From: Macrostomum hystrix
Taxonomy: Eukaryota > Animalia > Platyhelminthes
Length of the DNA: 64,000 nt
Assembly (NCBI GenBank): GCA_950097015.1
Contig: CATNEN010000007.1
Location: forward strand, 3,410,001 to 3,474,000
Direction: 5' to 3'
Each line of letters begins with the position of its first letter. The first letter of the stretch is position 1. A program made the translations under genes and the position numbers. The notes beneath the pieces are model-generated. The model saw only the letters and a program-made list of their open reading frames with translations. It made no database searches and was not told the origin of the DNA. Shown here piece by piece: positions 27,822-61,640 of this stretch.

Positions 27822-27867
27822 GGACTGGTGACCGTGGGCCATCACCAGCCCTGCCTAGCAAGGCCCA
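27809..27867 (+). promoter_or_regulatory. -1 ribosomal frameshift signal: G_GGA_AAC heptamer plus H-type pseudoknot
   Basis: Heptamer at 27809-27815 in the gag frame; pol is in the -1 frame. Stem1 CTGGTGA(27825-31)/TCACCAG(27842-48); stem2 TGGGCC(27835-40)/GGCCCA(27862-67). Confidence 0.8.
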
Positions 27868-35825: not shown

Positions 35826-37304
35826 AGCTGAAGTTGCAATCCTGTTCCTTATCGAGGAATGAAAGCGGGACCTTGATTTGCTGACCAAACAAAATTGAAC
35901 GGACCAACAAGTTTACTAAACTGAAGCTCAAAGCCGCTAAAAAGTTCAAACGAAAGTTTCCACCGTCAAATGTACTTAGGTGCGGTGTTAAAAATTCACG
36001 TCAGCAACAGTAAATTGACTTTGCCAGAGAAACAGTTTTAGAAAAAGCTGAATAGTTTCTTGGCAAAGGCGGTGCAGCAAGCATGGACCCTGCAAGACCA
36101 GCAGGGATTCTCCGCCATCAAGGGAGGATGGAAATGGGGGTTTCATGTCCAAAGCATTCCCTCTCCATCCATTCTGCTTCAAGCGTCATTTTGATCGATT
36201 AAGTTGCCTTCTTCCAATGATTTGAACGCCGCCTGGGGGTCCGGAGGATCAGTTCCTGACAGCTGACACTTCCCAATGTCCCAGCCATGCCAATAGCCGA
36301 CAACCAGACCTAAAGAAAAAAGCTCCGAGATATAAAAGTTTTTCCGAGTGGAATCGGATTCGCTATAAATAGAATGCGCCTCTTAAGAAACAATCGAAGA
36401 TGTTTCTGGGCTGCGTCTGAGCTGGTTTTGGGGTTTTTCCAAGCGGAGAACCGCAGAGAAAAAATCAAGGCAAAAAGCAGTGCTAAGATTGCGCAAAAAA
36501 TCCAACAGTTGAACAGCAGCCTCTCCTCCTGTCCTGTCTTTTCTCTCGGTCCTCTATCCCCACAATCTAAGGAGCCGGCGACAACGTCCCTTGGTGTCTT
36601 CATTCGCGTTCCAACCCAATAGATCTCCGCGCGCCACCCCACAACCAAATTTGAAAGCGACCTCTCAGCCATTGGCTCCCACGCCTGCAGGTCCTGTCTG
36701 ATGCGCGGTTAGGAAGAGACCTCACAGGGCGGGGGTTGGGAGGCTGCGCTGCTTGAAGGAGAAGGCAAAAATGCTGCTGTTTTGTTGCCACCTGCCTCAC
36801 AGCCGATTGAAGTCTCCCATTGAGCTGAGACAGTCACAAGTTTTGCGGCCTCCGTGCGACTCTCCCATTTCCCCTTCAAGCCGGCGCTCCCAACCTTCCA
36901 AGCGCTCCTAAAAGCTGCTCCTGAATCGGTTGCTGCAGCCTCCTCCTCCGCGGGCGCCAGAGCTCCGATCCGCGCGGAGGAAGCGTCAACAGTGACGAGA
37001 CGTGAGAGGCCGCGCTAGGAAAAAACAGCAGCAGAAAGTTCTCCCCAGACTCAGCTCGCAGCTCTGCTTCGCCAAACCCAGCTTCTGGAAAACAAAGGAC
37101 TTTATTTAGACCTTTGAATTCGCTATTGTGAGGTTGGGCTGTGCGGAGCAGCTGGATTAAAGACAGGCGGAAGGTAGTGGAGCTGACAAGAGCCCTGGGC
37201 GTTTGCCAGCATACAACAGGCGAGATCGAAGCCAGTCGCTGCTCTGATCGATAGAGTGACTGACATTTTGCGGTGCCTGTAGCTCATCTGCCGGTACCGT
37301 TACC

Positions 37305-38248
37305 ATGCAGTCGCTGTGCCTAGCAACCCTGACTATGGCGATGGTTTTTCTGATGCTCGGTGCGGCGCAGTCGATGGCAGCAACGCGAAATTATACGAAC
37401 ATTGTGGACCGCATCGTGGGTCACATTTTCACCAACTACAACAAGCACCAGAGACCTGTGCCAGCCAGCAAGCAGAACAAGGACGGCACGCTGGAGGAGG
37501 ACCCGACCCTGGTGCTCGTGAACATGAAAATCCTCAGCATCAACAAGGTCGACGTCATCAACATGGAGTTCACTCTAGACATGTACCTGAGGCAGTTCTG
37601 GCGCGACAGACGCCTCAGCTGGGAGAACATTCCGCAGTTCAAATTCTACAACGACTCCATCGCCATCCCGGCCAAGAAGGAGCACCTGTGGCTGCCGGAT
37701 CTGTTCTTTCGCAATGGCAAGCAGGGCTACCTGCACGAGATGACGCAGCCAAACTACCTGATACGCGTGGAGCCAAACGGGCAAATCCTGTACTCACAGA
37801 AGGTCACAATGAGGTACGCCTGCCAGATGCAGCTGCAGACGTTCCCTATGGACACACAGACCTGCACTGTGAACATCGGCAGCTACGGCTACACCACCCG
37901 CAACCTGCTGTTCCGATGGAAGCGCGACGAGGACAAGGACGCCGTGGAGCTGGACACCATGCAGATCTCCGAGTTCAACACGCCGAGCAAAGCTGAGATC
38001 ATCGACTGCACCAGCGGCAGCGCCACCAGCACCGGCAGCTACGCCTGCCTGAAGGTCGTCTTCAAACTGGAGCGACAACTAGGTAGCTACCTGTCCAGCA
38101 CCTACATTCCAGCCATCCTCATCGTGACGGTCAGCTGGCTGAACTTCTGGATCAGCGTGGAGGCCATACCAGCCCGGGTGTCCTTGGGTGTGCTCACACT
38201 GCTCGGTATCCTCACTCAGGGCATGTCAGTCATCAACAACTTGCCCAG
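37305..38248 (+). CDS. Anion-selective Cys-loop receptor (GluCl/GlyR-like), first exon A: signal peptide, ligand-binding domain, M1, M2
   Basis: Hydrophobic leader; WLPDLFFRN loop A; Cys-loop CQMQLQTFPMDTQTC; loop B SYGYT; second Cys pair CTSGSATSTGSYAC; M1 YIPAILIVTVSWLNFWI; PAR anion filter (AIPARVSLG). Ends CCC AG|GTGAGT (phase 2). Confidence 0.93.
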
Positions 38249-38992
38249 GTGAGTGCACGCACGAATTTGGGTGTGCTTTTGTTTTCCGGCCAACACAGGT
38301 AGGCCACGCAGAGGCGGCGTGCAATCCGATCGCAATTAGCGAAAGCCTTCTTGACCCGGCATGCCGGCCCAGTGTCTAACCCGAGTCTTCATTACCTCTT
38401 CTTCTCATGCCTCACTCTCGACTCGCGGCCACCCAAACTCTCTTAGCCTGCCTGGGGACGGAGAGAAGCGGAGACAGGGAGGAAATCTTCGGTCCGAGTC
38501 TCCTTTTTGCTTATCCCTGTGTCTCACGCCTCTAGCCGGGTAATTGTGTTGGTGTGTCAAAATTTGCCCAGCGCTCGCCCTCTATCTATCTGCATGGGCG
38601 TGCCTCTGAGCAGAGCTCACACAGACTCACAAGAAGTAGCCCCCCTCCTCCAGACTCAGCGGCCACGACTAAAGCCACTAATTGCGGATTCGGGCCTGCT
38701 CTGTGAGCTGTTTCTTACGTCCGTATGTTCGAGGCCCGCGCCTTCTACACTTCCTCGTAGCCTCTTGACTCTCTTAGGCTACTAAATTTTGCTTCAAGTA
38801 GCAGGTGCCGAGCCAGCTTCCCCCCTTCGGCCGTGTCGTCATGCTTGGCGCAGAGCGTTGAGTGGACCGAAAATTTTATTCGAATGAACTTTCCTTGCCA
38901 AGCGCCAAGCGCTTCTACTTCCATAAAGTCTCAATTAGGTGCACTGGAGCATGTGACGCTGTACAGTATATAATCTACCTGACTTGTCTGAG

Positions 38993-39781
38993 TTATACAC
39001 CATCCTGAGCTATACCATCCTGAGCTATACCATCCTGAGCTATACCATCCTGAGCTATACCATCCTGAGCTACACCATCCTGAGCTATACCATCCTGAGC
39101 TATACCATCCTGAGCTACACCATCCTGAGCTATACCATCCTGAGCTATACCATCCTGAGCTATACCATCCTGAGCTATACCATCCTGAGCTACACCATCC
39201 TGAGCTATACCATCCTGAGCTATACCATCCTGAGCTATACCATCCTGAGCTATACCATCCTGAGCTATACCATCCTGAGCTATACCATCCTGAGCTATAC
39301 CATCCTGAGCTATACCATCCTGAGCTATACCATCCTGAGCTATACCATCCTGAGCTATACCATCCTGAGCTATACCATCCTGAGCTATACCATCCTGAGC
39401 TATACCATCCTGAGCTATACCATCCTGAGCTATACCATCCTGAGCTATACCATCCTGAGCTATACCATCCTGAGCTATACCATCCTGAGCTATACCATCC
39501 TGAGCTATACCATCCTGAGCTATACCATCCTGAGCTATACCATCCTGAGCTATACCATCCTGAGCTATACCATCCTGAGCTATACCATCCTGAGCTATAC
39601 CATCCTGAGCTATACCATCCTGAGCTATACCATCCTGAGCTATACCATCCTGAGCTATACCATCCTGAGCTATACCATCCTGAGCTATACCATCCTGAGC
39701 TATACCATCCTGAGCTATACCATCCTGAGCTATACCATCCTGAGCTATACCATCCTGAGCTATACCATCCTGAGCTATACC
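38993..39781. repeat. Highly homogeneous 15-bp minisatellite (CTATACCATCCTGAG)n
   Basis: About 50 near-identical units; explains the three 260-300 aa pseudo-ORFs. Confidence 0.97.
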
Positions 39782-40126
39782 TAACATCGCTCCAGTCTTC
39801 CGTCAGATAAGAAGTAGAGCGTTGTACTATTTGCACTCGCCGACCTCGCTGGGCTGATAAGTCAACATGGCGACTCTAAATTCGTACCATTTTTCCGCTA
39901 GAAAGTTTTCTCTAGGCCAATGGAATAGAGTGTAATTGGTTCTCGCATTTTCATGCAAGCCTCAGTATTAGCCTGCACTCTTTCCAAGTATTAAGTTCGA
40001 ACCGATCGGCGATTCCAGCATAGAGTCTATTGCTCATGGGGCATGTTTCGACTTCATTCTGAGTAATACTCGTAATACTTGTTATACCGAGCAATAAAAA
40101 TAGTAGCACAGCCGGAGCCATTGCGC

Positions 40127-40315
40127 GGCGCAACTGAAGGCTGCGTAAGGCTGTTCAGTCCATGGACTGGGGGGGACGCCACACCCACCCTCAATTACCC
40201 CAGCTAATGCTGGTACCCATTTAACATCTGGGTGAACTGAAGCAATGCAGAGTTAAGTGTTCTTAAAAATTGTTCCAGTAGAGTCGGGAATCGAACCCCC
40301 GACCTCAAGTAATGA
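40127..40315 (-). mobile_element. SINE copy (B-box, CORE-like domain and tail; A-box end missing)
   Basis: Reverse complement aligns with 16100-16292 (ggttcgattccc...cagttcacccag...aaatgggtaccagc...cagtccatggactgaacag...cagccttcag). Confidence 0.72.
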
Positions 40316-40329
40316 ATATGGATTTTTTA

Positions 40330-41760
40330 GATCGGGATAGCAATAGACACATCCAAGGGGATAAGATTGGGATAACAATAGACACATCCAAGGGGATAAG
40401 ATTGGGATAACAATAGACACATCCAAAGGGATAAGATTAACAATAGACACATCCAAGGGGATGATATTGGGATAACAATAGACACATCCAAAGGGATAAG
40501 ATTGGGACAGCAATAGACACATCCAAAGGGATAAGATTGGGATAACAATACACATCCAAGGGGATAAGATTGGGATAACAATAGACACATCCAAGGGCAT
40601 AAGATTGGGATAACAATTGACACATCCAAAGGGATAAGATCGGGATAGCAATAGACACATCCAAAGGGATAAGATTGGGATAACAATAGACACATCCAAG
40701 GGCATAAGATTGGGATAACAATACACATCCAAGGGGATAAGATTGGGATAACAATAGACACATCCAAGGGGATAATATTGGGATAACAATAGACACATCC
40801 AAGGGCATAAGATTGGGATAACAATAGACACATCCAAGGGGATAAGATTGGGATAACAATACACATCCAAGGGCATAAGATTGGGATAACAATAGACACA
40901 TCCAAGGGGATAATATTGGGATAACAATAGACACATCCAAGGGGATAAGATTGGGATAACAATAGACACATCCAAGGGGATAAGATTGGGATAACAATAG
41001 ACACATCCAAGGGGATAAGATCGGGATAGCAATAGACACATCCAAAGGGATAAGATTGGAATAACAATAGACACATCCAAGGGGATAAGATTGGGATAAC
41101 AATAGACACATCCAAGGGCATAAGATTGGGATAACAATACACATCCAAGGGGATAAGATTGGGATAACAATAGACACATCCAAGGGGATAAGATTGGGAT
41201 AACAATAGACACATCCAAGGGGATAAGATTGGGATAACAATAGACACATCCAAGGGCATAAGATTAGGATAACAATTGACACTTCCAAAGGGATAAGATC
41301 GGGATAGCAATAGACACATCCAAAGGGATAAGATTGGGATAGCAATAGACACATCCAAAGGGATAAGATTGGGATAGCAATACACATCCAAGGGGATAAG
41401 ATTGGGATAACAATAGACACATCCAAGGGGATAAGATTAGGATAACAATTGACACTTCCAAAGGGATAAGATCGGGATAGCAATTGACACTTCCAAAGGG
41501 ATAAGATCGGGATAGCAATAGACACATCCAAAGGGATAAGATTGGGATAGCAATACACATCCAAGGGGATAAGATTGGGATAACAATAGACACATCCAAG
41601 GGCATAAGATCGGGATAGCAATAGACACATCCAAAGGGATAAGATTGGGATAACAATACACATCCAAGGGGATAAGATTGGGATAACAATAGACACATCC
41701 AAGGGGATAAGATTGGGATAACAATAGACACATCCAAGGGGATAAGATTGGGATAACAAT
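40330..41760. repeat. 35/33-bp minisatellite (GGGATAAGATTGGGATAACAATAGACACATCCAAG)n
   Basis: Directly visible; flanked on both sides by SINE segments. Confidence 0.95.
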
Positions 41761-41773
41761 ATACTGGATCTGG

Positions 41774-41894
41774 CTGGGTGAACTGAAGCAATGCAAGGTT
41801 AAGTGTCCTTACACATTGTTCCAGAGGAGTCGGGAATCGAACCCCCGACCTTCAAGTAATGAGTCCGACGCACCAACAACTAGGCTACGACCCC
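41774..41894 (-). mobile_element. SINE 5' half (tRNA-like head with A and B boxes, partial CORE-like domain)
   Basis: Reverse complement: ggggtcgTAGCCTAGTTGttggtgcgtcggactcattacttgaaggtcgggGGTTCGATTCccgactcc...tgcattgcttcagttcacccag. Confidence 0.7.
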
Positions 41895-42084
41895 CGTCTA
41901 CCACCCTCTCTTCACCTACACCAACCAATATTAATAGTACTAAAATGGTATTAATATAGTGCATGGGCTCTCAATATAGAATCGAGTAATAGGCGCCCGC
42001 CCTCGCTCTTAGCTCTTAGCGCTCTTAGCGAACGTCTTGTCCCTGAATGAGGCAAGGCTGAGTAGATCAAAGGCGACACTGAGG

Positions 42085-42995
42085 ATATAATGAACATTGT
42101 CTTGACGTTCTGGGGACAGTTAATGTACTCGTACATAGTCTTGACTTTGTGGGGTCAGTTCATGTACATAGTCTTGACTTTGTGGGGTCAGTTCATGTAC
42201 ATAGTCCTGACGTTCTGGGGTCAGTTAATGTACATTGTCTTGACGTTCTGGGGTCAGTTAGTGTACATTGTCTTGACGTTCTGGAGTCAGTTAGTGTACA
42301 AAGTCTTGACGTTCTGGGGTCAGTTAGTGTACATTTTCTTGACGTTCTGGAGTCAGTTAGTGTACAAAGTCTTGACGTTCTGGGGTTGGTTAATGTACAA
42401 AGTCTTGACTTTGTGGGGTCAGTTAATGTACATAGTCTTGACTTTGTGGGGTCAGTTAATGTACAAAGTCTTGACGTTCTGGGGTTGGTTAATGTACATT
42501 GTCTTGACGTTCTGGGGTCAGTTAGTGTACATTGTCTTGACGTTCTGGAGTCAGTTAGTGTACAAAGTCTTGACGTTCTGGGGTTGGTTAATGTACAAAG
42601 TCTTGACTTTGTGGGGTCAGTTAATGTACATAGTCTTGACTTTGTGGGGTCAGTTAATGTACAAAGTCTTGACGTTCTGGGGTTGGTTAATGTACAAAGT
42701 CTTGACTTTGTGGGGTCAGTTAATGTACATAGTCTTGACTTTGTGGGGTCAGTTAATGTACAAAGTCTTGACGTTCTGGGGTTGGTTAATGTACAAAGTC
42801 TTGACGTTCTGGGGTTGGTTAATGTACAAAGTCTTGACTTTGTGGGGTCAGTTAATGTACATCGTCTTGACTTTGTGGGGTCAGTTAATGTACATTGTCT
42901 TGACGTTCTGGGGTCAGTTAATGTACATAGTCTTGATGTTCTGGGGTCATTTAATGTACATAGTCCTGACGTTCTGGGGTCAGTTAATGTACATA
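42085..42995. repeat. 33-bp minisatellite (TGTACATAGTCTTGACTTTGTGGGGTCAGTTAA)n
   Basis: Directly visible tandem array. Confidence 0.95.
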
Positions 42996-43599
42996 GTTTA
43001 GAGTTGACTTGACTGCGTTCCGACGGGGAGTTCAAGCAGTAATTTAACTAATCAAATGCGATATAACTGTCGGCCTCACTCTAACTGGATTGTCCCATTG
43101 GTGGTTTCAGAGTCCATACTCGTAGCAGACTTCTTCGACAGGTTTATTCAGTGGAGTTATGTTTCTATGCTCACATCAGGCTCACTGCACAGAGCTGTTG
43201 AATCTGGCTTAGATTCCAACTGCTCAATGCATTATGCTGAAGCGAATTAGTGTCAGGTTACCAGCGCTGTGGTTCATGAAGTCCCGATGCCAGCTGTCGC
43301 ACGGCATGAGACTCAAGCTAACAATGAGACCAAATATTGGCAGATTCTGAGTTTGGAGGCTCCGTCCAATTTGAAAAGTGACACAGCGCCTTCATTAGTT
43401 TTGCTTCTCTGCTGAACTTCTTGGTGGATTTTCGGCAATCAGTGATCGAGCAGGACCTTCGAATTCTGGTGCAAGGAAGGAGACTTTCAGTAACCTAGTT
43501 TGCCTGCTATAAATTTAGCTAAGAGAATGGCATGACAAGCAGCCGTGCAGCTTTTAGCGTGTAGAGTAGAGTTGAGCTTTACCACAGGGCACACTTTGA

Positions 43600-44650
43600 G
43601 TCGGGACGCTGAACTGTCGCACTTTCAAGGCCGCCTGGCGGAGAGGGTCGCTGGATAAGCCAGCGCTCGACCTCAGCTGTGACGTCAGCACGCTTCGGGA
43701 CGTGTCTATCTGAACCGAGCCTGCACTTCATTGTGAGGACCTAGGCACTTTGGTTAACCTCAGCGGATCAACGGGGCCATGGAGGAGTCGCAGTGCGGAT
43801 TGGCCCGAGACTGCAGCAGAGCTTTCGCTGCTTTTCCTTATCCCCCGGATGGCTCTGGTAGACGTTCTGCATTTACGCGCCAACTGCAACCCGCCCATGG
43901 AGGCTCAGGAGCTCTTCGAGCTGCTCTCTGCGTGCGTGTAGGAGACACAGTGGTCGTCCTCGGAGACCTAAATGCAGTTCCGCGTAGGTCCGAGTGGTCG
44001 CTGTGACACCCCACGAAAACGGCAGCACTAAAGTGCTGGAGGACTTCCTGGAGTGGCCGGCGCCGGTGCCGGGCAGGTGCCGGTGGTCTGGTAACTGATG
44101 TCCGTGAAGATCTGGTGCATCGCAGCGGGCTCGCCTGTCTGCATTTCGTTCTATGGGGGCATTCTTGCAGTCCGAGAGACCCTACCGTGATTGCCAGAGG
44201 GAGCTGCGCTGTTCCAGGCGGTGTGGTTGAAACCGGCAGAGACCTGGACGCTGACGGACTCGCTCGAACAGTAAGTAAACGCGGTGCACGCCGGCCTGCT
44301 GCGCGCCGCCTTGAAGATCATCGACGAGCGAGTCACTGACGCGTCGATCTATCGCCGCGCCGGCCCTGGCCCGCCTAAGTGAATTGCTGCATCGTCAACG
44401 ACTCCAGCTGGCAGGTCACATCATCCGCGCCGAGTCCTACATCCTGAAGTCGGTGCATGAGGTGCTGCTGGTCACGCTGCAGGCACCCTACTGGCGCGGC
44501 CAGGCCCAAACTTGGCGCGCTTCAACGACTGCCTGCTGGCTGACGCTGGCGCCCCGGACTCTGCCAGGGGTGCGGCTAAACTGCGCTCTGAAACCCTGGG
44601 TTTTGACCTTGATAGCGCGCATTGTTGCTGATGCTGCTGAAATGGACATC
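43600..44650 (+). mobile_element. Decayed, internally deleted non-LTR retrotransposon (LINE) fragment
   Basis: Frameshifted AP-endonuclease motifs IYAPTAT (~43870) and TVVVLGDLNA (~43950). These are followed closely by post-RT motifs TWTLTDSLEQ..HAGLLRAAL and RQRLQLAGHIIRAES, with no RT core between. Confidence 0.65.
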
Positions 44651-46249
44651 CGAAAAGAATTAAATTAAGGAAAATCCGTAGAAGAAGGACTTGGAAGCCT
44701 AAGAAACAGAAGAATATTTCGTTTTGAAAAACTACATGAGCAGTTAACAAGAATCCGCAACGATTTGAAGACCACTAAGGAAAATGCCTAGTTTGCAACT
44801 GCAAGTTGCTGAGACAAAAATAGAAGGCATTAGGAGTTCTTAAATGATAAATAGCCACTTTGTATGGCTCCAACTCGATCAGGGCGATTTTCTCGTCCAA
44901 TTCACACACAAACATGTAGCAATATTCCGTAGCACACACACGCTTCTGAGACTAATTTTAGGAAATGAATTGACCCACATCGCTTTCTCTTTTAGCTAGC
45001 CAGGTTAAAAAAAATTCTAACAAAAATGGGATGATAAGCGAGGCTAGTGTAGCACTTCGATTGTAGCGAAGGGTCCGTTGGCAATCAGTTGGGATCTCTA
45101 AACAGATAGCCGAAGATAGGCAAATTGAGCTCGAAAACAGTTGAGTAGATTTAAGCTAAAGCGAGGGACAATTTTAAGGTGCGAGTAGCTTACTAAGTAG
45201 GGTGTGCGGCGAATCGCGAAATCCCTTGCAATTACATAATTTGGAGAACCTCAGAACAAGTCCAAGAATATTCTCAAACATAAGGAATATCGTATAATAT
45301 TTCCTTGGATAAACTATAAACAGCACACTTTCCACGAATCCAATAATTTTAAGAAAGACTATATATTCTTAGAAATTCCTTTTTAAGTGGCTTAACAATT
45401 CCTGGAAAAATTTTGTTTCCCAAAACTATTTTCCACGATTTTTCAACTCTGAACGTTCAATTAGGATTTTAGAAGTTATTCCCAATAAACAAATAACTTC
45501 CGAAACGCAGATTTTATCAAAAAATTCTCATTGACAATTTTACTTTTCTGTTTCTGCCGCTGACTTTCAATTTCCGGAGTTTTCTCCTTTTAATTCGAAT
45601 TTCTCATTTCCTGAAATTTTAGGTTTTTTCAAATTTTAATTGATAAAATTCTTGTCAAATTGTAGGGACTTTATATTTGATTTCCAAATTTTTGCGGTGC
45701 ACAACATATTTCTTCGATTCCAGAGCATTTAAGAGGATTTTTGACTAGACGTGGATTGCAATATTTTTCTCTCTAAGAAAGTAATCTCACCTGCGTGTTT
45801 TTTAACTTCCCGCCTTTCTAGGAAACTGTAAGCGTTTCAACACTAAATTTATTTTTTTCCCAACTGCTGGCATGACACCTCACCATTTTAGACGCAGATT
45901 AATTGTCTGTGAGCAGGCTGTGGTTTGTATTGATACAAAAATGACTGAACGAAAACTGCCGACGGAAATGACCACATTTCATATTGGTATCAAAAAATTT
46001 AATATAAAGGTGACGCACTGCTTGCTGTCAGCCAAATTCATCAGCAAAATAAACTACTTCATTTTAAATAAAATTAAAGAAAGTGAAAAAATCAATCAAC
46101 GATAAGTTGGTCGTTAGATAAAGTGTGTGGATTAGAAACGCAAAATAACACGTCCAAAACATCGCCTGATGCCATCCGCCAGCCTTGATGAGACACTCGG
46201 AGACATTATCTGGATGTGCTCTGCCCGCTATACGATCTCGGACCCCAGC

Positions 46250-48135
46250 TCCCGAGTCGATACTGATTACCAGCCCCCAGCCCTGCAATCGAAAATGATT
46301 CCAGCCCCAATCCCCACTCGATTCTGATTACCAGCCCCGAGCCCCCCAGTCGATAATAATTACCAGCCCCGAGCCCCCCAGTCGATAATAATTACCAGCC
46401 CCGAGCCCCCCAGTCGATAATAATTACCAGCCCCTAGCCCCCCAGTCGATAATAATTACCAGCCCCAATCCCCAGTCGATAATGATTCCAGCCCCAATCC
46501 CCCAGTCGATAATGATTCCAGCCACGAGCCCCCCAGTCGAAAATAATTACCAGCCCCTAGCTCCCCAGTCGAAAATAATTACCAGCCACGAGCCCCCCAG
46601 TCGAAAATAATTACCAGCCCCTAGCCCCCAGTCGATAATAATTACCAGCCACGAGCCCCCCAGTCGAAAATAATTACCAGCCCCTAGCTCCCCAGTCGAA
46701 AATAATTACCAGCCACGAGCCCCCCAGTCGAAAATAATTACCAGCCCCTAGCCCCCCAGTCGAAAATAATTACCAGCCACGAGCCCCCCAGTCGAAAATA
46801 ATTACCAGCCCCTAGCTCCCCAGTCGAAAATAATTACCAGCCACGAGCCCCCCAGTCGAAAATAATTACCAGCCCCTAGCCCCCCAGTCGAAAATAATTA
46901 CCAGCCACGAGCCCCCCAGTCGAAAATAATTACCAGCCACGAGCCCCCCAGTCGAAAATAATTACCAGCCACGAGCCCCCCAGTCGAAAATAATTACCAG
47001 CCACGAGCCCCCCAGTCGAAAATAATTACCAGCCCCTAGCTCCCCAGTCGAAAATAATTACCAGCCACGAGCCCCCCAGTCGAAAATAATTACCAGCCAC
47101 GAGCCCCCCAGTCGAAAATAATTACCAGCCCCTAGCCCCCCAGTCGAAAATAATTACCAGCCCCTAGCCCCCCAGTCGAAAATAATTACCAGCCACGAGC
47201 CCCCCAGTCGAAAATAATTACCAGCCCCTAGCCCCCCAGTCGAAAATAATTACCAGCCACGAGCCCCCCAGTCGAAAATAATTACCAGCCACGAGCCCCC
47301 CAGTCGAAAATAATTACCAGCCCCTAGCCCCCCAGTCGAAAATAATTACCAGCCACGAGCCCCCCAGTCGAAAATAATTACCAGCCACGAGCCCCCCAGT
47401 CGAAAATAATTACCAGCCCCTAGCTCCCCAGTCGAAAATAATTACCAGCCACGAGCCCCCCAGTCGAAAATAATTACCAGCCCCTAGCTCCCCAGTCGAA
47501 AATAATTACCAGCCACGAGCCCCCCAGTCGAAAATAATTACCAGCCCCTAGCCCCCCAGTCGAAAATAATTACCAGCCACGAGCTCCCCAGTCGAAAATA
47601 ATTACCAGCCACGAGCCCCCCAGTCGAAAATAATTACCAGCCCCTAGCCCCCCAGTCGAAAATAATTACCAGCCCCTAGCCCCCCAGTCGAAAATAATTA
47701 CCAGCCACGAGCCCCCCAGTCGAAAATAATTACCAGCCCCTAGCTCCCCAGTCGAAAATAATTACCAGCCCCTAGCCCCCCAGTCGAAAATAATTACCAG
47801 CCCCTAGCCCCCCAGTCGAAAATAATTACCAGCCCCTAGCCCCCCAGTCGAAAATAATTACCAGCCCCTAGCCCCCCAGTCGATACTGAATACCAGCCTC
47901 CAGCCCTGCAATCGATAATGATTCCCGCCCCAATCCCCAGTCGATACTGATTCTAGCCTCAGTCCCGCAGTCGATACTGATTCTAGCCTCAGTCCCGCAG
48001 TCGATACTGATTCTAGCCTCAGTCCCGCAGTCGATACTGATTCTAGCCTCAGTCCCGCAGTCGATACTGATTCTAGCCTCAGTCCCGCAGTCGATACTGA
48101 TTCTAGCCTCAGTCCCGCAGTCGATACTGATTCTA
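46250..48135. repeat. 32-bp minisatellite (CCAGCC(ACG/CCT)AGCCCCCCAGTCGAAAATAATTA)n ending in ~7 exact 30-bp units (TCGATACTGATTCTAGCCTCAGTCCCGCAG)
   Basis: Directly visible; two related unit types. Confidence 0.93.
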
Positions 48136-49560
48136 GCCTCAGTCCCGCAGTCGATACTAATATTGAATTAGAATTTGCCACAAATTTTTCTAATGCTTAT
48201 TACTACAAGTAGCGAGTTTGCACTTCGGTCTTTAAAATGAAATGAAATTCTTGTTTTTTGTTTAAGAAGCAGAACCGGAGTTTGGCCTAGCGCGTGTCTA
48301 TCTGCAGCCATCAAAAGCTGTCCCTCAAACTCACACTCGATCCTCAGCCCCTGAATATTAGCGAGCCCACAATGCGCCCAGCCCATCGCAGCCTCCGCTA
48401 GAGGCAATTTCTGATGAAAATCGATGAAAATCAATACCCCGTACCGGAGCACTCTGTATAAAATAAATGCATACACTATGATGTGTAGCTGCTGCGCGGC
48501 AGTAGATCGGCAGTCTGTTGGATCAGTTTACGTAGACTAAAAGACTTGCATCGCTGCCTACAACCCGTGCGGAATGCTAGTACAATTCTTAAATTTAGAA
48601 AGTTCTTTTGCGTGGCACACCCGATAGCAGCTGCATCGACTCATCCGGAATCCTGGCCTCATCATCCCCTGCCGTTCTGCCCCACTCTCTGTCCCTCTCA
48701 GTCTCTAGCTACTGCTTTCACCTTCATTCACAACAAACCGGAAAGGTGATTTAGAGCGTGAGTGGCTTGACTACTCGCCTTCACGCCTAGTGTGACTGAC
48801 AGCAGCAGCTGCTGCATTGACCAGACCCAGTGTCAGGTCCAGACTCCAGTGTTAGTTGGCCTCACACTTTTACTTGTCCTTCACAAAGCAGTATTCCTAC
48901 CAATACCGTCACCCATTCCGCACTACACGTAAAACTACAGCGCAGAATTGATAATTAAATTCTCGTAGATTTCTCTGTGCTTTTAGGAGAAATAAACATT
49001 GACTCTGAACAGATGTACCACATCCATTTATCTCTACTTCAAGTCTGAGAAGTAGGGAATTATACAGAAAAAAAGAAAACATCTGGGTATTTGAAATAGC
49101 CCAGTGGTCTTCTGATTCTTCATCGATGGAAATGCCCGCATATTTTGTGGATTTGAAGCGCCACACAGTGTTAGTAGACTTTCAAAGCAGAGTTGACGGC
49201 ATTCCGTATGACAACTCGGTGACGAGGCCAGCGAGATAGAGAAAGGCACATAGTGCTTAGTTCCTACCCGTGTCAAGGTTGCTGAGCACTGATTGGTCGA
49301 GAGTTTACTGGGGCGGAGCACAGCACACATCGGGGCTGCCAATTGGACTATTTGGGCAAAGGCGCCTCCCAATGCGACAAGAGCTACTTCAGAAGCTCTG
49401 AGGCTGCACTCGAAGAACCAGAATCCTGAACCATAAGCCGCCAGCAGCACTGCTCACCAGCATGGTCTCAAGGCTGTCCGGCTGAGAATAGGGAGCCAGA
49501 CAGCTTGTCAACGGCAGGAGAGGTCGCGGAAGTGGACAGCCGAGAGCGCCGAGTGACGGC

Positions 49561-50570
49561 ATGGAGGCGGCGACGGCGGCCCGTCTTGCTGCTCGAAGCC
49601 GTCTGGCACTGTTGCTGCCGCTGCTGCTGCTGCTGCTTCCGCTGCAGCTGTCTCTGTGTGATATGACTGCCACGGCTGCAAACTACACAAACATAGTAGA
49701 CCGCATCGTGGAGACCATCTTCACCAACTACAACAAGCACCAGAGGCCGGTTGAGTTGGTCGATCCGACTGGCCAGCAGCCGCCGCCGCCGCAGGTCGAA
49801 GGCGGCAAGCCATTCGAGCCGCCAACCAAAGTGGACGTGAACATGAAAATCCTCAGCATCAACAAGGTCGACGTCATCAACATGGAATTCAGCTTGGACA
49901 TGTACCTGAGGCAGTTCTGGCGCGACAGACGCCTCAGCTGGGAGAACATTCCGCAGTTCAAATTCTACAACGACTCCATCGCCATCCCGGCCAAGAAGGA
50001 GCATCTGTGGCTGCCGGATCTGTTCTTTCGCAATGGCAAGGAGGGCTACCTGCACAAGATGACGCAGCCAAACTACCTGATACGCGTGGGACCCAACGGA
50101 GACATCCTGTACTCACAGAAGATCACCATGAAGTTCTCCTGCCAGATGCAGCTGCAGACGTTCCCGATGGACTTGCAAACCTGTTTTGTGAACATCGGCA
50201 GCTACGGCTACACCACCCGCAACCTGCTGTTCAAGTGGAAGCAGGACAAGGACAAACAGCCGGTGGAGCTGGACACCAGCATGCAGATCGCCGAGTTCAA
50301 CACGCCGAGCAAAGCTGAGACCATCGACTGCACCCAGGGCAGCGCCACCAGCACCGGCAGCTACGCCTGCCTGAAGGTCGTCTTTAAACTCGAGCGGCAG
50401 CTCAGCAGCTACCTGGCCGGGACCTACATCCCCTCCATCCTCATCGTGACGGTCAGCTGGCTGAACTTCTGGGTCAATATCGAAGCCGTGCCAGCCCGGG
50501 TGACCTTGGGGCTGCTCACCCTGCTGGGCATCCTCACCCAAGCCTCCACAGTGATGGGAAATTTGCCCAG
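49561..50570 (+). CDS. Anion-selective Cys-loop receptor (GluCl/GlyR-like), first exon B: signal peptide, ligand-binding domain, M1, M2
   Basis: Leu-rich signal peptide; WLPDLFFRN; Cys-loop CQMQLQTFPMDLQTC; AVPARVTLG; paralog of exon A. Ends CCC AG|GTGAGA (phase 2). Confidence 0.94.
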
Positions 50571-52214
50571 GTGAGACAACGGCCCGCCTAGCCGGGAAAA
50601 TGATCCTCAACAGCCGTGTGGGGATTTTGGGATTTGAGATACGGCCGGCAGCTCATTTCCATATTCCCTAGCAGATCCCATCAAGCAGCTCTGCATCCCC
50701 CGGGGGGGGGAGCTAAGCTTTTATAAATCCTTCTATTTTTTGAAGGCAGTTTTCGGTCTCGAGAATGCAGAGAGAGTCAGACAGAAACTACACGCGTATT
50801 TGAGTTGAGAATGCCTGATGCAGGTGGGCCGCACTCAGCTCAACTCCATCTTGCTTCGCCTGTCAAATAGTCCCGACTTTCCCGGAATGCAACGCGCTCG
50901 TGGCCGACGAGTAAAGTTTAAAGGAGGAAGGCCGAGTAGACTCCGAAGTTAATGCTCTCGGCAAGTTGGCAAACACTGCTGTTGCCAGGCAGGCTGCGCA
51001 GAGCGAAGCACTTTGGGGAGTGATTTGTCGATTCTCTCGAAATCGGCATCTCAATCTCTCAGACTGATTGCGCGAACCGGGAAAATGCGAATTGAGTTCT
51101 CCTGCTCTGAGTCCAACTGCTGCTCAGGCACAGTTGCTCATGGACTCACCGCAATGCTCGCCTCAAGTGATTTTGAGTTGCCCAGTCCTCACTGCTGAAA
51201 GGTGTGAAAGCAAGTGTTCGCTCAAGTGAATTAAATTGAGAATTTTTCTGTTGGAAATCGCCATTTTTTGTCAAAATGAAACTTTTCTTTCATTTTTCTA
51301 AAGTCTTGAGTCGGACTCTTAAGCCAACTCCGCCTTACAACGGCACCCATGGGGCAATCAGACGGTAACAGCTGTTGTGGCTTATAATTGCCTTAGAATA
51401 CTCGAGTGTATATTTTCCTTTGTGTTAGCCTTGCACGCCTCGCCCCCGCATTTGTGGCACTCGCTTCGGGTTTTGAAAGGCCGGGTTCCAGTTTAGCGGC
51501 TTGATTATCTGTTTACACAGACCACCAGCGCCATCGGCTTACAGGTCCGCGCTTTTGCTTTCTTCAGCAAAATGTTTTGCTTCTCTACCAGCCCTGATTC
51601 CCAAAGCTGATTTCGACGCTTTCCCCGGTAAATCTTTGACGCCCTGCTGTTGTCAAGCGGATGTGACAAGCGAACTGTCCGTTGGCGCAGCTGGAAATCA
51701 GCTTTCAGAATAAGCTAAGCTGCCAGAATAAGGAACAACTAAGGCGAACTTTAGGGCGTGTTTCTAACTCCAATTTAAAAAAATCTTTTGACACAATGCA
51801 TCCACAGCTTGGATGATGGGAGTTGGGAATTCTCTACGAGAGAAGGCCAACCATTATAGTCAGGCTTTTGTTGCTACCCAGCAGTGTATAACATTCCCTT
51901 TGGTGCCCAAATTAGTAGGCTGTCTCTTCTGCTACTGCATCACAAACCGATCGATAGCCCTGAATGCATGGCAGCATATTGCTTGCTTCTCTCCCAGACT
52001 CCGTGTTTCCTCCACAAGCAAAGCGCACGAAAATTCCCTTCATGATTCTATGCCTGCTTGTCTCAGCAGTCCTGGGGGGTTGGCGAGCCGTGTTTAACTT
52101 TTGCCAGCAACAGAGAGAAAACTGCCAAAACAGCTTCCTGAACACAGCTAAACAGCCCTGTGCCCTGCCAGCTGAAAGCTTTATGCTGGACCTAGAAACT
52201 TTGTCCTACGTTCC

Positions 52215-52950
52215 AATCCCCTCCGATCCCTATCTCCCCTACGATCCCTATCTCCCCTCCGATCCCTATCTCCCCTCCGATCCCTATCTCCCCTCCGATC
52301 CCCATCTCCCCTCCGATCCCTATCTCCCCTCCGATCCCTATCTCCCCTCCGATCCCTATCTCCCCTACGATCCCTATCTCCCCTCCGATCCCTATCTCCC
52401 CTCTGATCCCTATCTCCACTCCGATCCCTATCTCCCCTCCGATCCCTATCTCCACTCCGATCCCTATCTCCCCTCCGATCCTAATCTCCCCTCCGATCCC
52501 TATCTCCACTCTGATCCCTATCTCCCATCAGATCCCTATCTCCCATCAGATTCCTATCTCCCCCTCCGATCTTTATCTCCCCTCCGATCCCTATCTCCCA
52601 TCCGATCCATTTCTCCCCTCCGATCTCTGTCTCCCCTCCGATCCCTATCTCCCATCCGATCCTAATCTCCCCTCCGATCCCTATCTCCCCTCTGATCCCT
52701 ATCTCCCATCAGATCCCTATCTCCCATCAGATTCCTATCTCCCCCTCCGATCTCTATCTCCCCTCCGATCCCTATCTCCCCTCCGATCCCTATCTCCCCT
52801 CCGATCCCTATCTGCCATCCGATCCCTATCTCCACTCCGATCCCTATCTCCACTCCGATCCCTATCTCCACTCCGATCCCTATCTCCCCTCCGATCCCTA
52901 TCTCCCCTCCGATCCCTATCTCCCCTCCGATCCCTATCTCCCATCAGATC
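52215..52950. repeat. 18-bp minisatellite (TCCGATCCCTATCTCCCC)n
   Basis: Directly visible, inside the Cys-loop receptor intron. Confidence 0.93.
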
Positions 52951-54396
52951 AAATTCGTTTTGAGGACAGCAGAACGTGACAGGACGCGACACGTGCTTCT
53001 AGAAACATCCCGCTCCAATTTTCTTCCCACTTTTCTTGGTCACTTGATCGCGCGAATTCCCAGGCCAGTGTTGTCAGTCTAATCTCTCTCTCTCCCTGCC
53101 TCATCATAAACTGCACGGCCACGTGACCTCAGGTGTGTTAAAGAGAGCTCGGGAGAGACGTGGCACCCGCAGCAGAAAGGCGGGCGACTAGCGGAAAAAA
53201 GGACAGAAAATTATGGAGCCGGGTTTCTTTTTCTGTCGCCGACATATTCTGTCCACGCCTTCTCGGCTACCATCACACCGCTGCCGCGAGTCACAAAAAT
53301 GTGTGTGAGTGAGTGCTCCGTCTGTCAGCTAAGATTCTGGCGAGAAGCTGAAGGAAGCGAGAGACGCAGAAAGAGGCCAGATGAGTGGCAAGTATGTTCT
53401 GGGAACTTCTAGGCAGAGGGGAAGAGGGACAGAGAGGGCAGGGTATAGAGTGCGCGCTTTCTCGAATACTTGATAGGAATTCCGCATGAGAGCCCTTGGC
53501 GTCACAGGACAGCGGGCGCTGCTTCGGCTAGTTCGGCCAAACGCGGGGCCTGGAGCTCGCCGGGACTCGGCTGATGGAGTTGGTCTGGAGTTTTTTTAGC
53601 TCAAGGGCAGAAATTTGAGTTGTCAGCTCGCGGTGAATAGGTCAACGAGGTTTACGTTGGGTCAGGCCCAGCATGTGAAATGATTTCTTTTTCTAATAAA
53701 CGACTATCGATCGCGTGTTGAAGACACAAGTCCTCGTGGTGTGCCGACCTTATAGCCGCCCCGACGGTTTTCTACAGCAATGCACTACTCAAACATCGCC
53801 CCGTTGAACTAGTCAACAGTAGAAAGACAACTGGGAATGTCAATTAGTCATTTTTCCGCTCATAAAATTTCTTCATGCAACCATGTCGGCTCCGCAGACT
53901 GTGTCAATTAGTCGCAGGGAACATTGTTCTTAGCATCCCAGTCACCACGATCCCCTTCATCACCGTCTAGAGCGTCGGCGGCGACTGTCGGGACCTTCAA
54001 CAAAAGCACCCGATCAGCATCTCAAAGACGGCTGCTTTTCCAAAGACGGTTGAAATTGAAAACTCCTCTTCAGCATGCAGTCTTCAGTCAGGAGACAAAA
54101 TCAGTGAATGAAAATGAACGATGGCGACTTTCTAGGTTGATTTGTGCACACACAGGCAACATTTTTGTGTATTTAATACTCTGGAATGCTTAGTGACTGA
54201 GAACAAGGGTCCCAACGACAGTTAGACTCAGAATATTGAACCGTATAGTTTTATAAAGAGGGAAAATTTTGGTGGACTTTCATGAAAATCGGTCATTCGG
54301 TTTGGAAGCTGTCGTGAAGTAGGCAGTGGGTATTTGAAACACCACCGTGCTCTTTCTGCTGCTAAATAATTTCGCATCGTCCGAAACCTCCCGCAG

Positions 54397-54706
54397 AGTG
54401 GCCTACATCAAGGCCATAGACATCTGGATCATCGCCAGCATCATGTTCGTCATCGGAGCCCTGATCGAATTCGCCGTGGCTTCATTCCGCGCCCGCCGCA
54501 CGAAGATGGAGAACTGGCAGCAGGAGATTCGCAGCGTTGTCCGCTCCGAGCTCCAGCGACTGGCCGTCATCCGCGGACCGCCTCCGGGCATGCCGACGCC
54601 AGGAGCTGCCGCGGTAGCCGCGGCCGGCAACGCACACGGCTATCCGGGCTTTCCAGAGGAGCTGGAGGACCTGCTGGTTGTCAGCGTTGAGGAAGGCGGC
54701 AAAGGA

Positions 54707-54748
<42 letters not shown>

Positions 54749-54904
54749 GGAGCTGTGGCCCCGATTCCATCGCCAGACTCCGACATCGACGCTTACAGCC
54801 GGTTCCTGTTCCCCGCCTGCTTCCTGCTCTACAACTGCTTCTATTGGCTGTATTATCTGGTGCTGGTGGTCAAGATTGACCCCGGCCAGGGCGACCGTGC
54901 GTGA
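54397..54904 (+). CDS. Cys-loop receptor terminal exon: M2-M3 linker, M3, short intracellular loop with poly-Gly, M4
   Basis: Acceptor cctcccgcag|A completes the phase-2 Arg codon, giving LPR-VAYIKAIDIWIIASIMFVIGALIEFAVASF (M3) and DIDAYSRFLFPACFLLYNCFYWLYYL (M4). Stop TGA at 54902-54904. Confidence 0.92.
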
Positions 54905-58830: not shown

Positions 58831-59859
58831 AGATAACCTCTGAGATAGGAGATAGAAGCAGGGAGAAAACAAATTCGATAAGCCCAGAAGGAGCGACACT
58901 TTGCGTGATTGGTAAATCCCGGAGTCGCAGTAATTAAAAGGCGCGAATGTCCCACCTATCGCTCCCGAACGCAATCAATGTTGCTACATGTCTGGAATCG
59001 CACATCAAAGGCCAGCTATAGGGGTGGAGTTTTAGCCATTAAATCTTAATTTAGAATCTAAATTGGCAAGAGATTGAAGACTGCGAGAAGAAACACAAAC
59101 AGGAAATCGTCAGGGAGAAAGCAGGAAATAAATCCGAGCTCCAGTTTGAGCACTGCTCAAGGCCTCAGTGGGGGGAGCTTATTATCCCGTCACGGTCTCC
59201 CCCACTTCCCCTGTCCTTTTCCCTTCTCCCCGCTGGTTTTCAGGAGAACTCTCCCAGTTTATCGCCTCGGGCGGCCCGCCAGGCCTGATGGGATTCCCTC
59301 TCTGTGGGGATATTTTTTGTTGTTGGCAAGAACAGCCTCAGACTGCATATCAGACGTGCTCTCCGCCTGCTTTCGGCCTTCAAAAAGAGACTTCTGCTTG
59401 AGAATGAGAACCCTAACACAGGAGTTGCCAGTGGGGAGATGGGACTGAGGCTGCGCCGGTAGGGGGATCAAGGAATATGAATATGAGGGCATTTGGGAGA
59501 GAGGTTGTAGGGGATAAATTTAGGCTCCGACCCTCCCCCTACACCTCAGGCAGTCTGATCCCAAGATCCCAATATCGGCGGTCTTGTATAAGGAAAGAAA
59601 TCCCATGTTCCTGGCGGTACCGGGCTGGCATCCTCAACTTCTTTGTGCCGCCGCAGCGCCTCCCCTTTCCCCCTTACCAAATCCCCGGCGCGCGAGAGTT
59701 CGCGTTTTGGCCCTAATTTTCCTTCTACTTCATTCTCCCAACTAACTAACCCCTCTAAAACTCAATCACCATCCTCATCTCATCATTTGCCCAACCCTGA
59801 TTGCCACAGTGTTAGCTCTGCGTGTCCTACTCTAATCAGCTCTATCTCATTCCTTCTGA

Positions 59860-61640
59860 CTCTCTCACACATCCAATCTCATCCTAACTCACCGTCTCTC
59901 CCATCCAATCTCATCTTATCTCACTCTCTCACCCATTCTATCTCATCTCCCACTCTCACACATTCACTCCCACCCAATCTCATCCTAACTCATCCTAACT
60001 CACCGTCTCTCCCATCCAATCTCATCTTATCTCACTCTCTCACCATTCTATCTCATCTCCCACTCTCACGCATTCACTCTCACTCACACATTCACTCTCA
60101 CTCACACATTCACTCTCATTCACACATTCACTCTCACTCACACATTCACTCTCACTCAAACATTCACTCTCACTCACACATTCACTCTCATTCACACATT
60201 CACTCTCATTCACACATTCACTCTCATTCACACATTCACTCTCACTCACACATTCACTCTCACTCACACATTCACTCTCACTCACACATTCACTCTCATT
60301 CACACATTCACTCTCATTCACACATTCACTCTCATTCACACATTCACTCGCATCCAATCTCATCCCAACTCACCTCTCTCCCATCCAATCTCATCCTAAC
60401 TCATCCTAACTCACCGTCTCTCCCATCCAATCTCATCCTAACTCATCCTAACTCACCGTCTCTCCCATCCAATCTCATCTTATCTCCCTCTCTCACCATT
60501 CTATCTCATCTCCCACTCTCACACATTCACTCTCACTCACACATTCACTCTCATTCACACATTCACTCTCACTCACACATTCACTCTCACTCACACATTC
60601 ACTCTCATTCACACATTCACTCTCACTCACACATTCACTCTCACTCACACATTCACTCTCATTCACACATTCACTCTCATTCACACATTCACTCTCATTC
60701 ACACATTCACTCTCACTCACACATTCACTCTCACTCACACATTCACTCTCACTCACACATTCACTCTCATTCACACATTCACTCTCATTCACACATTCAC
60801 TCTCATTCACACATTCACTCTCATTCACACATTCACTCTCACTCACACATTCACTCTCACTCACACATTCACTCTCATTCACACATTCACTCTCATTCAC
60901 ACATTCACTCTCATTCACGCATTCACTCTCACTCACACATTCACTCTCATTCACACATTCACTCGCATCCAATCTCATCCCAACTCACCTCTCTCCCATC
61001 CAATCTCATCCTAACTCATCCTAACTCACCGTCTCTCCTATCCAATCTCATCCTAACTCATCCTAACTCACCGTCTCTCCCATCCAATCTCATCCTAACT
61101 CATCCTAACTCACCGTCTCTCCCATCCAATCTCATCCTAACTCATCCTAACTCACCGTCTCTCCCATCCAATCTCATCTTATCTCACTCTCTCACCCATT
61201 CTATCTCATCTCCCACTCTCACACATTCACTCCCACCCAATCTCATCCTAACTCATCCTAACTCACCGTCTCTCCCATCCAATCTCATCCTAACTCATCC
61301 TAACTCACCGTCTCTCCCATCCAATCTCATCCTAACTCATCCTAACTCACCGTCTCTCCCATCCAATCTCATCCTAACTCATCCTAACTCACCATCTCTC
61401 CCACCCAATCTCATCCTAACTCATCCTAACTCACCGTCTCTCCCACCCAATCTCATCCTAACTCATCCTAACTCACCGTCTCTCCCATCCAATCTCATCC
61501 TAACTCATCCTAACTCACCGTCTCTCCCATCCAATCTCATCTGATCTCACTCTCTCACCCATTCTATCTCATCTCCCACTCTCACACATTCACTCGCATC
61601 CAATCTCATCCCAACTCATCCAATCTCACCCTCTCTCCCA
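59860..61640. repeat. Composite satellite: 18-bp (CACATTCACTCTCA(C/T)TCA)n blocks alternating with 42-bp (CTCATCCTAACTCACCGTCTCTCCCATCCAATCTCATCCTAA) blocks
   Basis: Directly visible; accounts for the 633-aa His/Ser pseudo-ORF. Confidence 0.9.

Follow-up and report, generated by a model that had tools for sequence, protein, structure and literature searches.

Cys-loop receptor subunits are normally encoded by separate genes. Variable first exons joined to a constant part are found in the clustered protocadherins and in UGT1A, where there are dozens of variable exons, each with a proven promoter. In the GABA-A receptor, alternative first exons have reportedly been described in one paper, and no direct precedent was found in the literature for alternative first exons sharing an M3-M4 exon in Cys-loop receptors. 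Two further systems are relevant here. At the unc-49 GABA-receptor locus of Caenorhabditis elegans, the known exception to separate subunit genes, a shared N-terminal extracellular part is combined with alternative 3' blocks, which contain parts of the binding site and all transmembrane segments (Bamber et al. 1999, summarised in PMC6920096). In the insect genes Gr28b and Gr39a, several long alternative N-terminal exons, which originated by tandem duplication, are spliced to shared C-terminal exons (PMC3011837).

The DNA analysed here (the window, a stretch of 64 kb from Macrostomum hystrix) contains a Cys-loop locus that is best read, with a probability of about 0.8, as one complex gene for two subunits, in which two paralogous first exons in tandem (A and B) are each joined to a shared last exon, C (Table 1). 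The open reading frames of A (314 codons plus 2 nt) and B (336 codons plus 2 nt) are intact, each encodes its own ATG and a hydrophobic leader, and both are recognised by the Pfam profile Neur_chan_LBD (E 4.5e-46 and 3.7e-43, respectively). Exon C comprises 1 nt, 168 codons and a stop, and is read from 54398. Its acceptor (CCCGCAG/A) faces two phase-2 donors that have CCCAG/GTGAG in common, and the codon split at the A/C and B/C joins would encode Arg, as in full-length relatives (...LPRVSYIK...). The Neur_chan_memb profile is divided in the same way: positions 1-49 lie in both A and B and positions 52-119 in C, so that the pieces abut in the profile, and by likeness to full-length relatives M1 and M2 are assigned to A and B, and M3 and M4 to C. 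In a tblastn search of the 64 kb with A, B and C (E<=10), a single copy of C and no further Cys-loop piece were found. This upholds the claim of an earlier note on this DNA that a lone M3-M4 exon lies downstream, with none between 38249 and 49560; the open reading frames, donors and Pfam matches likewise agree with its description of two intact paralogous exons that run from leader to M2 and have an identical phase-2 end, and the product lengths it gave, 483 aa (A-C) and 505 aa (B-C), were obtained again on recomputation. Almost half of the A-B interval (5,042 of 11,312 nt, 45%) consists of satellite arrays, and no significant Pfam domain was detected in the open reading frames of at least 99 aa from this interval (eight) or from the B-C intron (two).

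Table 1. Features of the locus, in window coordinates; a slash marks the exon border.
Feature	Position	Strand	Remarks
5' untranslated part of exon A (minimum extent)	37062-37304	+	RNA contigs colinear into coding part, 0 differences
Variable exon A: start codon, leader, ligand-binding domain, M1, M2	37305-38248	+	Donor CCCAG/GTGAGT, phase 2; open reading frame, Pfam, RNA contigs
Intron removed in A-C mRNA, 16,148 nt	38249-54396	+	Holds exon B and four satellite arrays
Satellite arrays in A-B interval	38999-39781; 40329-41761; 42088-42997; 46243-48158		
Variable exon B: start codon, leader, ligand-binding domain with Pro-rich insert, M1, M2	49561-50570	+	Donor CCCAG/GTGAGA, phase 2; open reading frame, Pfam
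Putative B-C intron, 3,826 nt	50571-54396	+	18-nt satellite at 52217-52950
Single constant exon C: M2-M3 loop end, M3, intracellular loop with poly-Gly run, M4, stop	54397-54904	+	

From their sequence, the products are predicted to be anion-selective Cys-loop subunits of the Schistosoma-like flatworm glutamate-gated chloride channel (GluCl) type. GluCls are anthelmintic targets, and Macrostomum has been put forward as a free-living model of the parasitic flatworms. The residues that define the Cys-loop of A (C173 and C187, with 13 residues between them), the loop C pair (C235 and C248) and the Pro-Ala-Arg motif before M2 (P289-A290-R291) are invariant across the alignment. All protein matches with more than about 45% identity to A come from flatworms or unnamed contigs, and include SmGluCl-2 isoform 2; A is 53% identical to SmGluCl-2. 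A, B, both exons of the related species Macrostomum lignano, SmGluCl-2 and other flatworm relatives all have the Loop A arginine (FFRNGK; R136 of A). This arginine coordinates the glutamate carboxyl and defines glutamate recognition in the S-like GluCl clade (PMC4338433).

Contigs of four sequencing runs, whose coverage pattern indicates an RNA origin, were mapped to the region of exon A, the runs that contain junctions (X3 and X4) belonging to one study. Exon A is spliced to exon C across the 16.1-kb intron, skipping B. The exon A contig of X4 leaves the genomic sequence at 38248 with a 240-nt tail, the 30 letters shown being the start of C, and that of X3 leaves it at the same position with a 22-nt tail identical to the first 22 letters of C; both tails match the window at 54397 only. 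The earlier suggestion that the distant exon A is joined to the single M3-M4 exon is thus confirmed in two runs. At the other end, contigs of X2 and X3 start at 37062 and 37078, respectively, and no contig of the four runs reaches further upstream than 37062; the 243-nt untranslated part contains no ATG. A candidate acceptor that had been pointed out near 37282 is not used, as the contigs are colinear from 37062 through the ATG, and this colinear 5' end favours an alternative first exon over an internal cassette in the case of A. In all four runs, contig depth is zero over 38268-38990 (about 0.7 kb of the intron) and over 1.2 kb upstream of A, and the contigs of each run add up to about 48 Mb, as expected of a transcriptome. 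Protein searches returned only three distant matches to exon C, none of them from Macrostomum, and, for exon A, genome-predicted models but no full-length Macrostomum transcript product.

Exon B is transcribed in the same runs as A: letters specific to B, starting at 49686 and 50477, form contig tails in X2-X4 that match those positions only, and the B-derived contigs are confined to exon sequence. The contig break points in X3, together with the anatomy of the locus, suggest that B is joined to C as well. In this run, an A contig and a B-derived contig have the same length, 150 nt. Each begins with the first type-specific 31-mer that follows the shared tract 38113-38150 and extends 22 nt beyond its donor. 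Since A and B have only the last 8 nt in common at their 3' ends, both contigs would end at the last type-specific 31-mer if both exons were joined to C.

The orthologous locus of M. lignano, taken from an assembly independent of that of M. hystrix, contains one exon of each type, A, B and C, in the same order and with the same donors and phase (NIVC01001215.1). No second C exon was found at this locus; a weak M4-like tblastn match downstream of its C exon (L001:25773-25883, E 0.012) was taken as chance, the one frame translated, which may not be that of the match, having a stop at either end and lacking a clear M4 motif. Between the two species dN/dS is 0.17 for A, 0.20 for B and 0.16 for C (dS 0.67-0.97, the highest value being that of B), which points to similar purifying selection on the three exons. 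Outside these exons, tblastx of the M. lignano flanks against the window gave noise only, and no conserved non-coding element (promoter or splice selector) was found between the window and the M. lignano locus, A, B and C alone being conserved. Public gene models for A-type exons of M. lignano lose homology exactly at the donor, being either truncated (P0019) or read through the donor into the intron (P0001, P0002), and the model of a second A-type exon in this species likewise stops at the donor.

The two parts of the variable exons appear to have had different histories. The regions from before M1 to M2 cluster by type, A versus B (support 100/99), whereas the core of the binding domain clusters by species (support 96/100). 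As judged from these trees, the A/B duplication is older than the split between M. hystrix and M. lignano, and gene conversion keeps the binding-domain cores of A and B almost identical within each species. The differences retained in both species lie in M1/M2 and in a Pro-rich insert, found only in B, in the N-terminal loop, so that the different binding pockets proposed in the earlier note were an overstatement. We know of no report that stretches of the variable exons of Gr28b or Gr39a are kept alike by gene conversion.

Other explanations of the locus differ in how A and B are brought into an mRNA and in whether both are used. An unlikely one treats A and B as internal or trans-spliced cassettes that exclude each other, served by one upstream promoter or exon or, in the case of B, by a spliced leader added near 49517. 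Macrostomum does use spliced-leader trans-splicing, and an AG is present at 49516-49517, 43 nt before the ATG of B, the use of which in an A-B-C form would preserve the reading frame; however, the contigs of A run on for 243 nt upstream of its ATG without any foreign 5' tail, A and B each have a start codon and leader peptide of their own, and the upstream sequence shows no conservation with that of M. lignano. It is very improbable that C is used by A only and that B is a transcribed but non-productive partial duplicate, or uses an unseen 3' exon. The junction from B to C does rest on inference, but B adjoins C, has kept its open reading frame, the donor and phase of A and the conserved pore residues of its type, is expressed, and has evolved with a dN/dS of 0.20 over a dS of 0.97 from its M. 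lignano orthologue; additionally, the lengths of the X3 contigs fit a B-C junction, and there is no other M3-M4 exon at the locus of either species.

Two artefacts have also to be considered. That the assembly has collapsed or dropped another M3-M4 exon behind A, with A and B being ordinary separate tandem genes, is a highly improbable reading, even though the satellites that fill 45% of the A-B interval are prone to collapse and tandem paralogues occur as complete single-exon genes in another flatworm sample (L003). Against it stand the same single-C layout in an independent assembly of a different species, the letter-for-letter identity between the shown part of the A transcript tail and the one C exon, and the M. 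lignano A-type gene models, in which homology runs out exactly at the donor. Shared layout and equal selection on A, B and C make both a dead duplicate and an assembly loss unlikely, and with the RNA contigs added these two readings were rejected. Finally, the joined A-C sequence might be a processed retrocopy seen in DNA rather than RNA, the library type of X2-X4 not being on record. The likelihood of this is negligible: DNA libraries would be expected to cover the flanks and intron of A, where no contig was found in the four runs, the size of the contig sets is that of a transcriptome, and the B-derived contigs, too, consist of exon sequence only.

In the preferred reading, that of one gene with two alternative first exons, each first exon would have its own promoter and the choice between them would be made at the start of transcription. 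Transcripts that start at the A promoter would lack exon B, since B would not serve as an internal exon; the protocadherin, UGT1A and Gr28b loci behave in this way. The A-C and B-C products would be almost alike in their ligand site and identical in M3, loop and M4. Differences would lie in residues of the pore lining and M1 (2', 15'-17' and 19', numbered by alignment of M2 to GlyR alpha-2) and in the loop after the N-terminal helix. In GlyR, GABA-A receptors and RDL, such M2 positions affect conductance, gating and sensitivity to blockers and modulators. A more speculative extension, which we consider possible but rather doubtful, is that this design is family-wide among the S-like GluCls of Macrostomum, as suggested because the second M. 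lignano A-type exon model also stops at the donor. Promoter choice might then yield cell-specific pore variants, while conversion would prevent the ligand-binding cores from diverging, and all variants might be anchored and trafficked in the cell through their common M3-loop-M4 module; the locus would represent a domain swap that arose naturally at the M2-M3 loop and has been maintained since before the species split (dS about 0.7-1.0).

The retention of the locus in evolution suggests that a module of ligand-binding domain, M1 and M2 can work with a common M3-loop-M4 when the cut is placed in the M2-M3 coupling loop, which would make it a natural counterpart of the chimeras used in gating studies. 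The A/B pair also offers a clean case in which gene conversion and selection act on different parts, leaving the binding site alike and the pore different. On the practical side, these exons are incorrectly represented in the public gene models of M. lignano.

By sequence, the products are related to SmGluCl-2 and SmGluCl-3 of Schistosoma mansoni (PMC3757052, PMC4338433), which belong to the same clade and share the PAR anion motif, the two Cys-loops and the Loop A arginine, and from which the Macrostomum locus differs in its M2-M3 loop intron and shared 3' exon. From the perspective of gene design, Gr28b and Gr39a are similar in that each alternative exon encodes most of a ligand-gated channel subunit and is spliced to a shared C-terminal part, although they belong to an unrelated 7-TM family and have four to five variable exons and three shared ones. 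In the protocadherins and UGT1A, too, a constant exon is combined with variable first exons that carry a start codon and a signal peptide of their own, but the variable exons number dozens instead of two, and the promoters are proven there and only inferred here. At unc-49, one Cys-loop locus also gives rise to several subunits from a shared block and alternative blocks that include pore-forming helices; there the choice falls on 3' exons, whereas here the 5' blocks alternate, the 3' M3-M4 exon is shared and the choice is most likely made at the start of transcription. The layout of the Macrostomum locus is the reverse of that of unc-49.

In the Cys-loop chloride channel locus, two paralogous first exons (A and B) are followed by a single M3-M4 exon (C), and sequencing runs place the end of A directly against the start of C. 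Runs holding exon A comprised four from one 2020 study (~48 Mb of contigs each, with 29-62% of the sampled words) and one filed under another organism label. The contigs of X1-X4, runs found by this search, were mapped on window positions 35830-38990, where they are confined to 37062-38248, mostly with zero differences; the 1.2 kb before them and the 0.7 kb of intron are free of contigs. Coverage limited in this way is the pattern expected of RNA. One X4 contig extends 240 nt past 38248 (30 letters shown) and one X3 contig extends 22 nt, both tails being foreign to the mapped stretch, and their sole match in the window, with 30 letters compared for X4, is 54397, the first base of C. A is thus spliced to C over 16,148 nt with B skipped, which bears out one of the two junctions that the earlier note had singled out for checking. 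The 5' UTR of A is colinear over 243 nt and contains no ATG in that length; the candidate acceptor proposed near 37282 falls away, as contigs pass through it unbroken.

Exon B is expressed in the same samples as A, since some contigs that touch tracts identical in A and B run on into letters whose only matches are in exon B (49686 and 50477). Identity at the 3' ends of A and B is limited to the last 8 bases, and in a 31-mer graph where both exons share these bases and are joined to C, type-specific contigs end 22 bases past the donor. The X3 contig of exon A comprises 38121-38248 plus 22 bases, and the B-derived contig of the same run, likewise 150 bases long, starts at the corresponding point with respect to the shared tract 38113-38150; it would therefore end 22 bases past the B donor. 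Length and start thus fit a B-to-C junction in X3.

Features of the Macrostomum hystrix window and of related loci
Feature	Sequence	Position	Strand	Description
205-aa ORF	window	5111-5728	+	Pfam 'Decapeptide repeat region' above cut-off; weak PMG match
Ty3/gypsy-like LTR retrotransposon gag-pol	window	26985-30034	+	two long ORFs that overlap each other; exon A lies ~7 kb downstream
Exon A	window	37305-38248	+	stop-free translation of 314 codons + 2 bases, ends ...NNLP + AG
Exon B	window	49561-50570	+	336 codons + 2 bases, layout like A, ends ...GNLP + AG
Exon C	window	54397-54904	+	preceded by CCCGCAG; frame from 54398: VAYIKAIDIW..., M3, loop, M4, stop
Five satellite arrays	window	38999-39781, 40329-41761, 42088-42997, 46243-48158, 52217-52950		units of 15, 35, 33, 32 and 18 nt; 27-60 copies each
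633-aa ORF	window	59643-61544	+	five 'bacterial transferase hexapeptide' repeat stretches, Pfam E 1.2e-30
M. lignano A-type exon	L001	10001-10944		donor CCCAG/GTAGG
M. lignano B-type exon	L001	22006-23000		donor CCCAG/GTAGG
M. lignano C exon	L001	24824-25298		single copy; acceptor CACAG/G
BOX15_Mlig026840g2 (P0001)	L001	10001-16514		reads through donor, unrelated exons added
BOX15_Mlig000841g6 (P0019)	L001	22006-22804		ends inside B-type exon
Tandem paralogues	L003	585-1979 and 4538-6100		2.5 kb between them

By translation, the product of A comprises a hydrophobic leader, a Cys-loop ligand-binding domain, M1 and M2. GTGAG lies directly 3' of both A and B, and the codon split by either donor and the C acceptor encodes Arg, as in full-length relatives (...LPRVSYIK...). 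Pfam assigns Neur_chan_LBD and positions 1-49 of Neur_chan_memb to A and B, and positions 52-119 of the latter to C, so the pieces abut. A tblastn search of the whole window with A, B and C (E<=10) gave one copy of C and no further Cys-loop fragment besides the three. These results uphold the earlier description of A and B as intact through M2 and ending in LP-AG before GT, of a single M3-M4 exon and of an A-B interval free of a second VAYIKAIDIW-type exon. The loop between M3 and M4 contains a poly-Gly run, encoded by (GGC)n at 54707-54750; the M. lignano C exon is shorter by 10 codons and diverges there. The closest proteins are those of M. lignano (83% identity), followed by SmGluCl-2-type subunits of flatworm glutamate-gated chloride channels. 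Both A and B have the PAR anion motif, both Cys pairs and the Loop A arginine (FFRNGK), the residue that binds the glutamate carboxyl in the Schistosoma-like clade (PMC4338433).

The layout recurs in M. lignano (contig NIVC01001215.1, fetched as stretches L001 and L002), where the related-species comparison suggested earlier finds an A-type exon, a B-type exon and one C, with no second C exon in 32.8 kb (E<=10). When the two loci were compared by blastn, conservation was confined to A, B and C, and neither a hidden exon nor a conserved non-coding block was found. Among the public M. lignano gene models, P0001 and P0002 extend beyond the donor into intron sequence and P0019 is cut short, so annotation pipelines too found no M3-M4 near these exons; BOX15_Mlig026840g2 and BOX15_Mlig000841g6, from both of which the M3-M4 exon is missing, look mis-annotated. 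In L003, a Logan contig (SRR24765318) from another flatworm-like sample, two complete intronless tandem paralogues share the GluCl clade of A and B and have their own M3-M4 each, which may represent the ancestral arrangement.

Satellite DNA makes up 45% of the A-B interval, and satellite arrays occupy much of both introns; blastn between the loci found none conserved with M. lignano. Pfam gave no significant domain for the larger ORFs of either the A-B interval or the B-C intron. Elsewhere in the window, the gag-pol ORFs encode a zinc knuckle, aspartyl protease, reverse transcriptase and RNase H, and the hexapeptide-repeat ORF is unusual for an animal window as a long single ORF.

Exon A is as constrained as B and C, with Nei-Gojobori dN/dS values between the two species of 0.17 (A), 0.20 (B) and 0.16 (C) at a dS of ~0.7-1.0. 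In sliding comparisons, A and B of the same species share 83-100% DNA identity in the binding-domain core (alignment codons ~101-250), and orthologues only 69-89%; in the N-terminal loop and M2, orthologues are more similar than A and B. The tree of the core clusters the two M. lignano exons (support 96/100) and that of the pre-M1-to-M2 region the two A-type exons (100/99). This grouping by species in one region and by type in the other indicates a duplication older than the species split, and trees and mosaic identity together point to gene conversion that homogenises the ligand-binding core while type-specific residues are kept. Of 11 substitutions fixed by type in both species, nine fall in pre-M1, M1 and M2. 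Numbered by alignment with GlyR alpha-2, A-type and B-type differ in M2 at 2' (S and T), 15'-17' (GMS and AST) and 19' (I and M); a Pro-rich insert after HQRPV in B is absent from A.

Separate promoters for the two first exons are the most likely arrangement. Transcripts starting at A would include B and then skip it, B not being recognised as an internal exon, and those starting at B would be spliced directly to C. A composite product is conceivable from the frame, as a hypothetical splice from the A donor to the AG at 49516-49517 leaves it open for 14 codons (49518-49560) into the B ATG, and use of this AG after the phase-2 donor of A would yield an in-frame A-B-C product; the contigs of X1-X4 show no such junction at the A donor.

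The variable/constant design is classically represented by protocadherins and UGT1A. For Cys-loop receptors, literature searches on alternative first exons returned no direct precedent for the A/B/C design. From one locus, unc-49 yields three subunits, with the front shared and the back varied (PMC6920096); in the Macrostomum locus the fronts A and B vary and the back C would be shared. Long alternative N-terminal exons with common C-terminal exons are present in Gr39a and Gr28b, which belong to an unrelated channel family (PMC3011837).
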